Below, one piece after another: positions 5,813 through 41,735 of a DNA stretch of 64,000 nucleotides. The notes under the pieces are model-generated. The model saw only the letters and a list, made by a program, of their open reading frames with translations. It had not been told where the DNA came from and ran no database searches. The position numbers and the translations under genes were made by a program. This DNA is from Magallana gigas. Taxonomy: Eukaryota. The stretch spans positions 59,644,001-59,708,000 of the forward strand of contig NC_088855.1 in assembly GCF_963853765.1 (NCBI RefSeq), read 5' to 3'. Every line of letters starts with the position of its first letter. Position 1 is the stretch's first letter.

Positions 5813-7599
5813 TTAAAGCCATACTTTTCCATAAGCTTCTTTTGAGTTTATGTCTTCGGATTGAAACGTTTTAAAGGAATCTTTCTTTGGAAGATCTGAG
5901 ATTTGAACTTTTCTACTAACATCAAAACTGTTGTCAAATTCATCACTGTCATACAAGTCCTCATTGTCATCGCTGTACTTTGAGTGTGACGTCATTTCCC
6001 GCGAGATAGTAATTTTTCGAACGAGACTATAACGCTTTTTTGATTTACTGTATTCACCGTCTGGTTGGGTTGTTGCATTATCTCCCCTTAACGTGCCGTT
6101 TTGTTGAGTTCTAGGAGGCGGTTGTAATGTAGATGAATTGTTGCTAAAAAATCCATCGCTCTCATACCTCAAGCCATTTAACTGTTGAGAGTTTTGATCT
6201 GAGATGTAGACTGTAAAACAATATCATCTAAAAATTAGTATTTGTCTACTTCATGTTTGGCCCAAAACGTATATATAACATTTTAAACTTTGGCTCGCTT
6301 GCTGTATTTTATATAACTGAAAATTGTGCATATTTTAACAATAGTATAATACTCATAATTAAAATATGCATATTATCAAATTAAGTAAAGATAATTACCA
6401 AACATGAGTTGAATATCAATGGTCAACAGTGTTCTGACATAAATGTTTCATTCTAACATACAAAAGTTCTTTACACTTTCTTTTTCTTTGATATGAATAG
6501 ATAAAAAATGACATCAAAGAAATGAAATACTTTAAGAAATGTAATTTTCCTGTTTTGAAAATAGCACTCACATGTCCTTGTTACTGTTTCTGTTTCTCTT
6601 TTACTGAAAAGTTTAAGTTTTCTTATTTGTTTTTGATAACTTAAATAAAAAAAAATCATTAAACGTACAGTTCTGCATGATGACAAAAAGTAATGATTTT
6701 GTTAAATTTTGATGTACCATTTACATTATAATTAAACGTATTTTTAGAAAGAAAGAGAGAGACAGAGAGAGACAGAGAGAGAGAGCATACCATTTTTTGC
6801 AAATTAAAAGCGCCCCAATGCAAGAAAAAGATACAAAAATTGACGATACTCCAATTATCATCCACATTTTGCCTCCTAAGAATTCTGCTAACTTTTCTTT
6901 TAAATCATTTTCTGTTGTGTCATCTTTCATGTAACCTATCGTATTATTGTCTAAAATGAATTATTTAAAATATTTAAAAGCAAACATAACACAAGGCGGC
7001 CTTAATTTTAAAACAAAATAAAATAAACAATAAAAAAGCATATAATATGAACGTAAATCATCAAATTTCTTTGGTCCATATACATGTATCTTAATTAAAT
7101 TTGACAGGAATTTGTAAACTTTAAAGTTAGACAAACGTTGTGTTGTTACCTGAACTGTAACCAGGGCAAAGTCCATATACTTTGTCACAGGTCTTGTTGC
7201 ACTCTAATGGACATTTCATCTTACATTTTTGTCCGTAGAATCCATCAATACAGTGTTTGCTACAATTTTCTCCAACTCTTCCAGCACTACATACTTCCGA
7301 AAAACAATGATTTATCAGAAAAAAATTCAGGAAGTAATCCATTCATAAAATGCAAAATCTTCAAAACATATTATACCTATGCAACGATCTCCTATAAGGA
7401 TAAAGTTTGTACAGCATACGCCTATTCTGAAAATGGAGACAAATGTTAAAAGTGACAAATAAAACCATTTGGTCAGATCTTAGTTCTTATATCCTCTCAC
7501 ATTACCTTACCCACACATGTTAGGGTCCACGGTAACAGAGCTGGAACACACATAAACACAAATTGTCAGTAAAGCGATCACGTATACACTAGCCTCCAT
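5813..7599 (-). CDS. EGF-like type-I membrane receptor, copy A (285 aa)
   Basis: Exons 7599-7511 (signal MEASVYVIALLTICVYVCSS), 7426-7377 (CC exon), 7293-7150 (EGF-like), 6935-6791 (TM), 6603-6572, 6210-5813 (tail ending AYGKVWL); all GT-AG, phases consistent, 858 nt in frame. Confidence 0.85.
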
Positions 7600-8130
7600 A
7601 TTCCTCGAATGCAGTGTGTTCGTTGTTGACAACTTCCCGGTGTGATGAAAATATTTTGTTTAGGATTTTTCTGAGCAGGAAATACTATCAACGATACCCT
7701 CTTTGAATTAGTGATTGTTAGTTTGTAATAAGCAGATGTACTGCATTACAAGTACAATAACATTTTCATTAAATTGGTTTGACATTTTACAATCGGTTGT
7801 AACAACATATTATAGTTTATTATATTTCAATTTCAGGAATGAATAACGATAACAAAAATACTTAGCCTCGCCCTCACACGACGGAAAAATGGGGAAACAA
7901 ACTTTCTTCTCATTGTGGGTTGAACCAACACCCATATTTTACCATCAATGGTGTATAAATTTAATGGACATTATCAGAACTATGAATTAGGATTCCTTTC
8001 AAAAGTGAACTTTTATTAATATCTATATAACAGAAATGCCTGGTTATCACTCCAATTCTTATACAGTTGGTGATTATTAATCAGAGAAGTTCTGAGTATC
8101 GGAAACCACATGAAACATGTACAGTTCTAT

Positions 8131-8998
8131 CAGGGATGGGGTAATTGAAAAAAGTATTTGTAACTGAATGTAATTAATTACATTTTTCAAAGTAATTGAA
8201 AGTAATTTGTAATTGAGTCTGTCTTCAATTACAAATAATTGATTGTATTTAAATACATTCCAAAAATATTGTGTATTTTCAATTACATCTCAATTACTTT
8301 TTTTCCAAGTTTAAAATATGAAAAAAGGTGTCTTATAATGATAAATAGATTTTATACATGTTTGGCATGGACTTTTGTTTATACATAAATTAAATGTCTC
8401 ATAATGTTTCATATGTTTATACAGCATAACACCCTGCCCAGGGCAATAGGTAAAGATCTAATTTTGTGGAGGTGTGAACTCCTCTAATTACCAAGAACCC
8501 CCATTGATTTTAGATTTAAGGGAGTCAAAATATCTCATTCTTGTGAATTATAGCAATTATTATTTATATACTGATATACTGTACTGCCAAAAGTTGTACT
8601 TTCTGAATAAACAAAGTTTTAATATGTGAATAAAAATTAATTCACTATAGAGAAAGTATTAATGAACTCAATGGTACTTAATGAATTTAATGTTAAAGAA
8701 AATTGCTCTAGAAATTTTTGAGAAATCTGATCTGAACTGAACTATACAACCTATAAAAAACATAACCGTATTTAAAGCTCTGTATATCTTAATGCTGTTA
8801 ATATATGTATATGTTCTTAAGATCTAAAAAATAAAACCAAAGTATTTGAAATGTAATTAATTACATTTATCAAAGTAATTGAGAGTAATTCATTACATTT
8901 TAAAAAATCAATGTAATTGTAATTGTAAGTAATTGATAAAATTGTCAATGTATTTGAAAGTAATGAATTACTTTTCAAAGTAATTGACCCCAACTCTG
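8131..8998. mobile_element. hAT-like non-autonomous DNA transposon
   Basis: Imperfect TIRs cagggatgggg / ccccaactctg; 8-bp TSD agttctat/agttttat (1 mismatch); GTAATT-rich subterminal repeats. Confidence 0.75.
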
Positions 8999-39380: not shown

Positions 39381-39667
39381 AATCATTTTGCCTATTGTTT
39401 GCTTTATTTGCAATATTTACAAAGTTTTAAAGCTGATTCAAACTTTGGAAAATACATCATGTTAAATTAAATAAACTTTTGACACAACGCTGGCTTCAGA
39501 TCTTTGGTCTCTAATTTACAATACCTTTTTTTAAATTATTTTTTATATGATAATACCATCGATTACATCAGTGGCTTTACTTTACAATGCATGACTGTTG
39601 ATAAATAATTGGATTTGTCAGCAAACGGTTACAAAACTGAATACGTTGAGACTAACGTCCTTCAGTA

Positions 39668-41735
39668 TCAGTTCTTTCCTTTCAGTTTCTTTATCTTCAG
39701 TTGTAGGTATTCAATCTCTAGTTGTATCTTCTGTACTGCCAGATCATCCATACTTGTACTGTGGTTCATTAAATGGCACTCACATATTTTCTCTATATTT
39801 GCAAAACATGAAAAAGGAAAGACAGAATGAGATGTAAGGATAACATGTCTCGTATAACGCAAGTCAAAACATGTATTAAAACTCTTGTCTTACTCTAACG
39901 TCTAGACCCGCCACAATACTTAATAAAAATCAATCGTTTTATGCGATGCACTTTTGAAAACTACGCTGTGTGAAATAAAACTCTTTTAAGGTATTTATAT
40001 TCTTGATATGTTGTTCCAAAATGCAATATTAAAGGAAATGTTGCTTTTACCAGGACAATCTCCCGATATTTTGTCACATGTTTCGTTGCACTCTGATGGA
40101 CATTTCTTCTCGCATAACCGTCCAAAGAATCCATCGGGACAACCTTCACTGCAGTTGACTCCATATTTTCCAGGCGTACACTCTATCAAAAAGAATATTA
40201 TATTTATACATTTGTTTGGGGTTTCTTATTATCAGTACATGTACATGTAAATTGGTTAACTATATTTCGTAAACCTTAGTGATGATATTATGATATTGAA
40301 ATGTCATTAGTCTTATACCGATCAAATCTTAAATTCGCGACACCTATCAAATAGTCCAATCCACACTTTTCAAAATTGTTTACCTTTGAGGGGTCAACCC
40401 AAAGGTCAGAAGGGAAAAACCAAACTTTTTCCTTCTTTAGGCTACCAAATATTTGGGCGTCCTGTGATAAAATTTCTTTGAATTTAATTTATTTCTTCAA
40501 TGTGTGGGTTGCCCCATCCTAGGGCAATCAAAATTCACAACGGAAACGGAATTTTATTGCCAAATGAAAAGTTACAAACCTCTAAAATACAAAGGCTACT
40601 GTAAGAAACCTATAGGTTTTTCCCCAAAGATGGCGGCCAGGGGACATAACTTTTGTAAAGTGTGGATTGGTCTATACAGGACAGGAAACCAAGTCTTGCT
40701 ACAGGTGTTGCATATAGCAGAACCAAATACTGTGGAATCATATAAATTCGTGGGGGCAAATTTTCGTGGATTATGGGTTTTATGCTTATTCTTGGGGGAT
40801 GCAATTTCGTGGATTGGTCGGTTTTCAGTTTCAGTAAGAATAGTTACTCTTTCAAAATCTGTTTTCGTCGAGGATGTATATTCGTGGGGGAGGGCTACCC
40901 AGGAATACCACGAAAATTGAGCCACCACGAATTCTAATGATTCCACAGTAGTAGGGTATATGTTGTTCGTATCCAATTTAGTTTTGTTTCATAATTATTA
41001 TTTCACTGAAGAACTTTTTTATATTCCCTGGACTATTCCCACCCTTTGTCCTTATCTTTTTCATTAATATGTATACATTATACAAAACCATGGGCTTACA
41101 TCATATAACTGTTGAAACATTAATTTATCATATCATTGTCAATTCACATCATTATTTACTTATTCAAAACAAAACGCATATGTCATATTTGTATTTATCT
41201 TATTATCAATGTCTTGTATTGCTTCTTTTCAAATTTCGATCCTCTGAAAACCAAAACATGTTTTAACTATTATCATGTTACCTGGGCACTCTCCCGATAT
41301 TACGTCACATGTTTGGTCACACTGTAATGGACATACGTCCTTACATAAACGTCCATAGTATCCTTCCGGACAAGCTTCACTGCAGTTCACTCCATAAGTC
41401 CCCGCCGGGCACTCTAATGAAAATAAAATCGTATGTTCATTTTGTCAGATTTAATTATATAAATTTATTTTTCGGTAATTGTCAAAGTTCAGTATATACC
41501 TATGCACCTGTTCCCGTCAAATATATAGTTTGAGCAGCAAATATTGTATCTGTAAAATTGAAAATGGAGATTAACATATGTTAACAGCTGTTCATGTTCT
41601 GGTGGTGGTATTGTATGACAGTATCGACCAGTAACCTTACCCACACAGACTGGGATCCACCAAGACTGAGCCCAGACACAAATGGACACCAATAACCAGC
41701 AGTGCCGACTTGTAAAGATGTACTGTGTCCTCCAT
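39668..41735 (-). CDS. Secreted two-EGF protein with coiled-coil tail, copy E (177 aa)
   Basis: Exons 41735-41641 (signal), 41549-41500, 41413-41282, 40182-40051, 39792-39668 (EKICEC...VQKIQLEIEYLQLKIKKLKGKN*); 534 nt in frame; no TM segment. Confidence 0.75.

Follow-up and report, generated by a model that had tools for sequence, protein, structure and literature searches.

Is the cluster of small receptor-like genes in this region of the oyster genome a set of rapidly evolving immune receptors, or does it encode membrane proteins of another kind? The cluster lies on the minus strand of a 64,000-nucleotide stretch of Magallana (Crassostrea) gigas DNA (NCBI RefSeq assembly GCF_963853765.1, contig NC_088855.1, positions 59,644,001 to 59,708,000), hereafter the window, in whose numbering all coordinates are given. 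It had been delimited by position 5813, the stop codon of copy A, and position 41735, the ATG of a module termed H. A preliminary description had read it as a family of immune or allorecognition receptors with a minimal ectodomain of the epidermal growth factor (EGF) type and with immunoreceptor tyrosine-based inhibition motif (ITIM)-like and other tyrosine motifs in the tail.

Here we describe three complete genes of a lineage-specific, duplicating family of small type-I membrane proteins. Their tails each keep exactly one tyrosine motif of the form Y-S-x-[V/I], which we distinguish from an ITIM. We propose, with roughly balanced chances of being right, that these are oyster-only mini-EGF receptors in which the tail is a docking scaffold resembling SCIMP and PAG and the genes are organized in modules.

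Three complete genes share a six-exon plan

The window contains 11 EGF-type exons, and exons for a transmembrane (TM) helix and a tail occur only with A, C, and D. A tblastn search of the window with the exons of A, C, and D and with 14 family proteins revealed no further TM or tail exons for units B, F, G, H, and Z'. The initial statement that at least ten units share one exon plan was therefore too generous. A, C, and D are the window's only complete genes of the family.

Gene A (RefSeq LOC105324269, 290 residues; model from sequence and an RNA contig), 5813..7599, minus strand: exons 7599-7511 (signal), 7426-7377 (CC), 7293-7150 (EGF), 6950-6791 (stalk and TM), 6603-6572 (micro-exon), 6210-5813 (tail and stop)
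Gene C (close to LOC105341442, 267 residues; spliced model, 96.6% identical to P0047 over its full length), 18450..21457, minus strand: exons 21457-21363, 21274-21228, 21119-20988, 20017-19891, 19314-19289, 18826-18450
Gene D, proximal form (close to LOC105341439, about 265 residues; both halves 93-98% identical to P0001/P0024), 26422..30627, minus strand: exons 30627-30539, 30446-30397, 30299-30168, 28664-28544 (3' end lost in a gap), 28203-28178, 26792-26422

The model of A matches protein P0042 (XP_011421626.3) of M. gigas letter for letter, and the RNA and DNA runs in which the sequence occurs are of oyster origin. The family is already annotated but uncharacterized: RefSeq lists all three loci as "uncharacterized protein" only, no paper naming their LOC or XP identifiers was found in the literature, and the identifiers are absent from the supplements of one single-cell haemocyte paper.

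When read from the sequence and spliced, A, C, and D each comprise six exons with canonical AG/GT sites and phases 2, 1, 1, 2, 1, which bears out exactly the exon order that had been proposed for the cluster.

Exon 1, 89-95 nt: signal, ending in ...VDPNMCG
Exon 2, 47-50 nt: CC micro-exon
Exon 3, 132-144 nt: EGF
Exon 4, 127-160 nt: stalk and TM
Exon 5, 26-32 nt: micro-exon
Exon 6, 371-395 coding nt: tail

Copy A is transcribed and spliced as predicted, with base-for-base RNA support. An RNA contig of 629 nt (record 9, run X2) joins all six exons at the predicted bases with 0 mismatches, through blocks 7597-7511, 50 nt, 7293-7150, 6950-6791, 32 nt, and 6210-6055. The joints listed for it are 7426/7511, 7293/7377, 6950/7150, and 6210/6572, each reading CT..AC, that is, GT..AG on the minus strand. 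In the RefSeq isoform X2 of this gene, the acceptor of exon 4 lies 15 nt further in, with loss of the residues DNNTI. Logan contigs of about 1 kb encode full C/D-type proteins of 265-267 residues and therefore represent spliced mRNAs. One further Logan contig, P0050 (215 residues), is a C/D-type transcript in which the EGF exon is joined in frame straight to the tail exon; the TM exon and the micro-exon are skipped, which would give a soluble form.

High-depth RNA reads also cover window positions 8100-9100 and 9500-10100. They fall on both strands, carry many mismatches, and overlap no open reading frame. We rejected them as transcripts of the family, and they are probably transcripts of dispersed repeats. 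A 413-residue UniProt model, P0045, fuses a B-like module to A via the 5' untranslated region of A, but its frame does not run into the ATG of A in the window; we treat this fusion as a prediction artefact or as another haplotype.

Two assembly gaps touch the gene models. The gap in C (19382-19858) lies wholly within intron 4, with the exon 4 donor (GT, 19891) 31 nt before it and the exon 5 acceptor (AG, 19314) 66 nt after it. The spliced frame across this intron is open and matches P0047 (LOC105341442) over the junction, and the gap is harmless to the model. The gap in D (28283-28543) begins inside exon 4, directly after ...GTTATGTTTTA at 28544, and leaves a few final codons of the TM exon, together with the donor, unread; the sequence on either side is of D type, and the continuity between the two sides cannot be verified from the window. 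The two gaps occupy homologous places in the two paralogs, in the intron 4 region just after the TM exon. Gene A carries a (CT)n microsatellite there (6741-6790), which was skipped as a repeat in read mapping. A hard-to-assemble, expanded simple repeat is likely to have broken the assembly at both C and D.

Every tail keeps one Y-S-x-[V/I] motif

The three genes encode proteins of 265-290 residues with a signal peptide, one eight-cysteine EGF unit, a short stalk, and a TM helix, followed by a tail of about 140 residues. The tail is predicted to be disordered; in the AlphaFold2 model of A, residues 151-290 have a predicted local distance difference test (pLDDT) score below 40. The tail of C carries VQYSKV, IIYEND, DSDEF, and AYGSIWL, that of D carries VEYSKV, FYENN, DSDEF, and AYGSIWL, and that of A carries GEYSKS, RYESD, DSDEF, and AYGKVWL. 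These are the motifs recorded earlier, namely VxYSKV, YEN, DSDEF, and a terminal YxxI in C and D, while A lacks the first two and keeps a terminal YxxV.

Alignment of the 14 family members refines this picture. The conserved blocks are a region around Y174 (R/I-Y-E-S/N-D), E-Y-S-K-x-K-K-R-Y/N-S, E-M-T-S-H, D-S-D-E-F, V-Q-I-S-D-L-P-K, and A-Y-G-x-[V/I/L]-W, and the invariant residues are Y174, S213, K214, S220, S247, S263, G286, and W289. The view that the tails bear conserved tyrosine motifs thus holds: besides the invariant Y174, exactly one Y-S-x-[V/I] is found per protein, in 14 of 14 members. Its position shifts between lineages. In A-type members and in those of C. virginica, Ostrea, and Saccostrea it is built on the second tyrosine of its block. 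In the C/D clade this second tyrosine is lost, and the motif has moved seven residues to the first tyrosine through a valine at +3.

The same valine, together with a valine at -2, is the reason why the C/D tails fit the ITIM consensus. A match to [S/I/V/L]xYxx[I/V/L] is found in only 4 of the 14 members, all in the C/D clade; A lacks it, as do all members from Ostrea, Saccostrea, and C. virginica. By chance it arises in about 20% of shuffled tails, and the ITIM cannot stand as a feature of the family. The Grb2-type YEN is also confined to the four C/D members: a YxN occurs in 30-38% of shuffled tails, and outside the C/D clade the aligned Y174 is followed by ES, ET, or QS. Csk-type motifs arise in 12-15% of shuffled tails and at least one YxxPhi in 70-77%. 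None of the 14 members contains an NPxY or an immunoreceptor tyrosine-based activation motif (ITAM). Since Y-S-x-[V/I] is kept in 14 of 14 members and the ITIM in four, we take the conserved element for a Csk/SCIMP/PAG-type site and not for an ITIM.

Further features bear on a comparison with SCIMP. A juxtamembrane cysteine is found within about six residues after the TM helix in 13 of 14 members (CKKCK, YKIC, CKIC), and in the Saccostrea echinata member the first cysteine follows at about position 9. A patch of prolines (PPP) is only partly conserved. Ten of the 14 members match the Pfam family SCIMP (PF15050) at E<=0.1, always collinearly over profile positions 5-121, and the score is spread thinly along the TM helix and the tail. 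The scores are 30-31 bits for P0002, 29.9 for P0012, and 27.6 for TM plus tail of the C-like P0047 (gathering cutoff 27). In mouse Scimp, Y58 binds the SH2 domain of Grb2, Y96 that of Csk, and Y120 that of SLP65 (PMC5253658, PMC9544816). The Y96 peptide is GQPSAWYSSVKKVRNKKV (PMC5253658), with the Csk site AW-YSSVKKV (PMC5253658, PMC9544816); the oyster counterparts are VQYSKVKKRNSQTRKNVV in C (VQ-YSKVKKR) and KKRYSLVRK in A. By these sequence criteria the tail would be best compared with SCIMP/PAG-type adaptors, although homology to SCIMP is unproven.

In the tail of D, the window allele reads KVKMCNS at 26630-26645, where other D alleles and nearly all members read KVKKRNS; the two changes affect a basic patch that hardly varies in the family, and lie beside an invariant serine.

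A reduced ectodomain of the SCARF1/MEGF10/PEAR1 type

The mature ectodomain has 65-100 residues, in which 12 cysteines and four glycines are invariant among the 14 members. After the signal peptide it starts with a vestigial EMI-like motif, 'DPNxC...CCxxY/F...C', consisting of the two ends only: DPNxC, then two to four residues, then CCxxY/F x5-6 C. No family member matches Pfam EMI. A profile of the family matches PDB 6U11 ("EGF-like domain-containing protein", two tandem units) at 2e-13, human SCARF1 (8HN0) at 1.4e-3, and the EGF repeats of Tie2 at 0.01. The N-terminus of SCARF1 has the same CCxGW motif, "ELQCCAGWRQKDQEC".

Relatives in other molluscs suggest how the EMI remnant relates to a longer motif. 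The C. angulata protein P0020 matches mollusc MEGF11 and PEAR1-like proteins at 1e-19 to 1e-22, and two Mytilus PEAR1-like proteins start with "DPHIC...(22 residues)...CCPDYVFKNGKC". The oyster sequence "DPNMCG-IGVCCTNFILIGDRC" looks like this Mytilus-type motif minus its middle. From these matches the ectodomain is assigned to the SCARF1/MEGF10/PEAR1 type. Single exons give sub-threshold Pfam matches to EGF_PEAR1L (20 bits against a cutoff of 37.5), EGF_STAB, and EVI2A. In the AlphaFold2 model of A (mean pLDDT 48.7) the ectodomain reaches 64-77. A Foldseek search of this model against the PDB returned nothing at E<0.1, and its list, mostly laminin-type EGF, SCARF1, Eph, and Tie2, is qualitatively consistent only. 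A homologue search with the ectodomain alone retrieved close relatives only, within the reach allowed by its word index.

A family known only from true oysters

A profile built from the three tails was searched against 1.84 billion representative proteins and matched 11 proteins; every match whose source is named belongs to M. gigas, M. angulata, C. virginica, Ostrea edulis, Saccostrea echinata, or S. cucullata. True oysters (Ostreidae) are the only group in which the tail family was seen. At depth its tree agrees with the species relationships. Ostrea and Magallana each have duplications of their own, and the Magallana A-type and C/D-type clades split after the divergence of C. virginica. The family is lineage-specific and duplicating and, in agreement with the initial view, has a minimal EGF ectodomain and is distinct from the long MEGF10/Draper proteins.

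The cluster differs in extent between sister species. In M. angulata (C. angulata CM046781.1) the distance from the H-D gene (about 799-812 kb) to the nearest A-type gene (about 897 kb) is about 85 kb, compared with 19 kb in the window, and the sister-species cluster is about four times larger. The two adjacent A-type genes there are only 67-68% identical to A of the window. Within M. gigas, three successive RefSeq versions of the gene A protein are 83%, 91%, and 100% identical to A of the window. Copy number and haplotypes therefore vary a good deal. The larger sister-species cluster, the pseudogenes E and F, and the chimeric B/Z' module, all described below, uphold the idea of family turnover.

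Probable distal 5' modules and incomplete units

Upstream of D lies a second front module:

H and G, distal 5' module of the D locus, 40051..41735, minus strand: H signal exon 41735-41641, H CC exon 41549-41500, H EGF exon 41413-41282, G EGF exon 40182-40051

All H and G exons are open, with AG/GT sites and phase-compatible junctions, and their EGF exons are of phase 1-1; between the H and G EGF exons dN/dS is 0.39. The protein P0020 of C. angulata (XP_052712647.1, "protein draper-like", 355 residues) consists of the H signal, H CC, H EGF, G EGF, D EGF, D TM, micro-exon, and D tail exons. Its gene spans 13.2 kb, with D's own signal exon inside the long intron between the G and D EGF exons. It is flanked in C. 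angulata by a lipocalin-like gene and a MazG/DCTPP1-like gene, and the MazG/DCTPP1-like neighbour is also present in the window. Since P0020 joins H and G to D exons and the splice sites in the window are intact, H and G are likely distal alternative 5' exons of D. Most likely, judging from this arrangement, a distal promoter of the D locus gives a form with three EGF units (H-G-D), and a proximal promoter gives the form with one, as in A and C.

The phase of the EGF exons would in general allow upstream modules of signal, CC, and EGF exons to be spliced onto a gene's own EGF exon. Several incomplete units are found in the window.

B, 14792..15241, minus strand: intact copy of A's first three exons (15241-15153, 15068-15019, 14935-14792)
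Z', 13283..13426, minus strand: lone 144-nt EGF exon of a second subtype, AG/GT, phase 1-1; copy of the Z exon 332-183
F, 23114..23819, minus strand: pseudogenised front module upstream of C
E, 11539..12420, minus strand: pseudogene with remnants of signal, CC, EGF, and TM exons
H', 49190..49643, minus strand: exact (100%) copy of the three H exons (signal, CC, EGF)
Z, 183..1455, minus strand: second-subtype gene, CC exon about 1455-1400, EGF exon 332-183, 3' end beyond the window start

The collinear series F, 22412-23111, 22168-22399, and C matches G, 36919-37611, 32258-32465, and D. This points to paralogy of the C and D loci along their full extent, with decay of the distal module of C, namely F. 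In F the junction of exons 1 and 2 reads TG|A, and the EGF exon has been enlarged by a 76-nt tandem repeat in about 4.5 copies (23114-23479), which multiplies a half-EGF unit (CDDGFYGVDCSETC) and contains stop codons. At the A locus, the distal module would be a chimera of B plus Z'. B is 88% identical in DNA to the first three exons of A overall, and it adjoins a copy of window positions 17-1388, which bears the Z' EGF exon. A form B-Z'-A is possible in that the phases allow it, and it is without support. Z itself, whose EGF exon is the one copied next to B, shows the second-subtype motifs CCYNEYFDSGTGKC and CSHGSLSFGKNCHSSCKKGFYGHLCSKPCGCEAHMCNEHTGC.

The pseudogene E has stops in its signal and EGF remnants, has lost the final cysteine, and carries GC at a donor site. 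H' belongs to a 2,210-bp duplication of 100% identity (41263-43472 = 49171-51380) that flanks a retroelement at about 44.7-48.8 kb with reverse-transcriptase and tyrosine-recombinase open reading frames. Given the perfect identity, this duplication may be real or an artefact of haplotype or assembly. Downstream of gene A, a tandem array occupies 3585-4402, with a 166-nt unit in four to five copies that are 81-92% identical.

The paralogs are mosaics of old and homogenised halves

The ectodomains do diverge strongly between copies, as had been noted. Among A and its A-type relatives, CC plus EGF is 61-82% identical and the tail 79-93%. Between C and D, the Jukes-Cantor (JC) distance is 0.30-0.49 in the ectodomain. 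We compared pairwise Nei-Gojobori estimates of dN/dS (omega) for coding segments with JC distances for non-coding ones.

C-D ectodomain: dS 0.66, dN 0.28, omega 0.43
C-D TM: dS 0.19, omega 0.51
C-D tail: dS 0.04, dN 0.06, omega about 1.5 (3 synonymous, 19 nonsynonymous changes)
A-C ectodomain: omega 0.18
A-C tail: omega 0.33
A-B ectodomain: omega 0.42
All EGF-exon pairs: omega 0.15-0.47
C versus D, 5' flank and introns 1-3: JC distance 0.44-0.78
C versus D, introns 4-5: JC distance 0.13-0.15
C versus D, tail exon: JC distance 0.05
C versus D, 3' flank: JC distance 0.30

The synonymous divergence of C and D differs 16-fold between ectodomain and tail (Fisher p = 8e-8), and the synonymous sites of the tail are less diverged than the adjoining intron (p = 0.02). 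The high divergence of the ectodomain is matched by that of synonymous sites and introns, and is therefore put down to age and mosaicism, not to selection. Taken to mean positive selection, "rapidly evolving" is not supported: ectodomain omega is 0.18-0.47 in every pair, and 12 of 12 ectodomain cysteines are invariant. The distances indicate that the paralogs are mosaics, with 3' halves homogenised by gene conversion or unequal crossing-over and 5' halves that stay old. The C-D profile is most simply read as the outcome of recurrent gene conversion or unequal exchange whose breakpoint lies in intron 3, and it does not require diversifying selection on the head.

Other comparisons are in line with such exchange. 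Between A and B, divergence in the EGF exon (0.11; dS 0.19) greatly exceeds that in the neighbouring intron 2 (0.012; p = 0.007). The tails of P0027 and P0028, from ENA and Logan contigs, are patchworks of C-type and D-type segments, consistent with ongoing C-D gene conversion in the population. After they were last homogenised, the tails of C and D diverged at a pace that fits neutrality (p = 0.38) and exceeds the long-term omega of 0.33 (p = 0.005). Intron 5 of D (26811-27752) contains an insertion of about 930 bp relative to C.

Half-gene conversion of this kind is a source of caution beyond this cluster. Where paralogs differ much more in the ectodomain than in the tail, conversion of one half of the gene can be the cause. 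Such a pattern should therefore not be taken for diversifying selection unless synonymous and intron distances are compared.

A proposed docking scaffold and its alternatives

In the interpretation that we favour, the tail would be a docking scaffold without enzyme activity, like those of the vertebrate palmitoylated transmembrane adaptor proteins (pTRAPs) SCIMP and PAG. In this scheme the juxtamembrane cysteines would carry palmitate, the conserved tyrosines would be substrates of a Src-family kinase, and a Csk-type SH2 protein would dock at the invariant Y-S-x-[V/I](KK) site, providing negative feedback on Src kinases. The C/D lineage would add a Grb2-type YEN site, and the small EGF head would supply SCARF/MEGF-type recognition of a ligand or partner. 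Several observations weigh against this scheme. The SCIMP match is weak, at best 31 bits against a cutoff of 27, and in the Pfam search the A protein of the window does not reach E<=0.1. Tail-only queries give no SCIMP match, and the TM helix alone gives up to 18 bits or nothing. The 14 members are mutually related, so that their repeated matches are not independent. The pTRAPs are almost devoid of an ectodomain; in the oyster proteins 65-90 residues are structured. The basis for the H-G-D isoform is a gene model of the sister species, and no M. gigas read across the G-to-D junction was seen. Y-S-x-[V/I] and the terminal YGx[V/I/L] also belong to the ordinary YxxPhi type of sorting signal, and DSDEF to the typical CK2/acidic-cluster type.

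This last point leads to an endocytic or scavenger receptor, an alternative we regard as unlikely, though a serious contender. Its EGF head would bind cargo or 'eat-me' ligands as do SCARF1, MEGF10, and Draper, YSLV/YSKV and the terminal YGx[V/I/L] would be AP-2-type YxxPhi signals, and DSDEF would be a CK2-phosphorylated acidic cluster. SCARF1 is indeed the nearest solved relative of the ectodomain with a known role, each of the members carries one or two YxxPhi motifs, DSDEF includes the invariant S247, and the several invariant serines suggest regulation through serine rather than tyrosine. Yet YxxPhi carries little information given its frequency in shuffled tails, and Y-S-x-[V/I] followed by basic residues is stricter than a sorting signal needs. 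NPxY, the motif by which CED-1, Draper, and MEGF10 engage CED-6/GULP, is missing, and known scavenger receptors have far more EGF units than the one to three of the oyster proteins.

The original proposal, in which a birth-and-death family of immune or allorecognition receptors couples to SHP-2 and Grb2 while its ectodomains evolve under diversifying selection, now appears improbable. It draws on the fit of C and D to [SIVL]xYxx[IVL] and YxN, on the 83-100% identity of the three RefSeq versions of the gene A protein to one another, on ectodomains less conserved than tails, and on the pseudogenes and the copy number that differs from the sister species. These points are met by the restriction of ITIM and YEN to the C/D clade and their frequency in shuffles (20% and 30-38%), by omega below 0.5 in every ectodomain comparison, and by the matching synonymous and intron divergence. 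No expression or immune evidence and no naming paper for the genes was found in the literature. An immune or allorecognition role is not supported by what could be tested on this cluster.

Still less probable, in our judgement, is a lineage-specific membrane protein, for example one of adhesion or matrix contact, whose tail motifs have no dedicated signalling role. The likeness to SCIMP would then be compositional convergence, both having an acidic, disordered tail rich in Tyr and Ser behind a TM helix. In its favour, the score against SCIMP is marginal and owed in part to the TM helix, and C/D tails diverged at omega of about 1 since their last homogenisation. In addition, a protein atlas search with TM plus tail gave only scores <=0.80, which are uninformative, with a mixture of small single-pass proteins as neighbours (A36R, opalin, SCIMP, syndecan-like). 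Against this reading stand the short tail motifs, which are kept with invariant spacing across Ostrea, Saccostrea, and Crassostrea at a long-term omega of 0.33, and the reappearance of Y-S-x-[V/I] at a nearby position on loss of the original tyrosine.

Beyond the docking-scaffold reading, a bolder version is a long shot: oysters might carry a receptor-linked relative of the SCIMP/PAG class, with a Csk/Grb2-docking tail still on a SCARF/MEGF head and with heads varied by distal 5' modules. If this were true, negative-feedback adaptors of the pTRAP type would predate vertebrates and would have begun as tails of recognition receptors. Oyster genomes are full of lineage-specific EGF-repeat membrane proteins. 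The present family, with three genes in the window and few per species, is small enough for direct testing, and binding of Csk, if it occurs, would provide an instance in a mollusc of the adaptor logic by which the thresholds of vertebrate immune receptors are set.

Comparison with known systems

To our knowledge, SCIMP is known only from vertebrates. With SCIMP and with PAG/Cbp, LAT, and LIME, the oyster proteins share a TM helix, juxtamembrane cysteines, and a disordered tail without enzyme activity. They also show the same order of features along the tail as SCIMP: Y-E-x, a proline patch, Y-S-x-V-K-K, and an acidic tyrosine region. At the sequence level, the oyster YSxV matches the Y96 Csk site of mouse Scimp (PMC5253658, PMC9544816). 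The oyster proteins depart from SCIMP in that their ectodomain is a structured one of EGF type where SCIMP has a stub only a few residues long, in that about 45 additional conserved residues at the C-terminal end (VQISDLPK ... AYGxxWL) lack a SCIMP counterpart, and in that a Grb2-type N at +2 occurs in the C/D clade only.

The ectodomain is closest in layout to SCARF1/SREC-I and the MEGF10/MEGF11/PEAR1/Draper/CED-1 group, with an N-terminal 'DPNxC ... CCxG[YWF] ... C' followed by an EGF-like unit of the form 'CxxGxxGxxCxxxCxxGxYGxxCxxxC...'. Both are type-I membrane proteins with a tyrosine-bearing tail, and some members of the oyster family are automatically annotated as 'draper-like' or 'MEGF10'. 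The oyster proteins differ in having one to three EGF units rather than about 5-17, in an EMI region reduced to its two ends with no Pfam EMI match, and in a tail unrelated in sequence, without NPxY and without an ITAM/YxxL pair.

The gene organization is reminiscent of the protocadherin/UGT1 type in that, at the D locus, distal and proximal sets of signal and CC exons converge on shared EGF, TM, and tail exons. The oyster genes have only two 5' modules each, not dozens, and the distal module, whose use is indicated only by the sister-species gene model, adds EGF units and does not replace the ectodomain.

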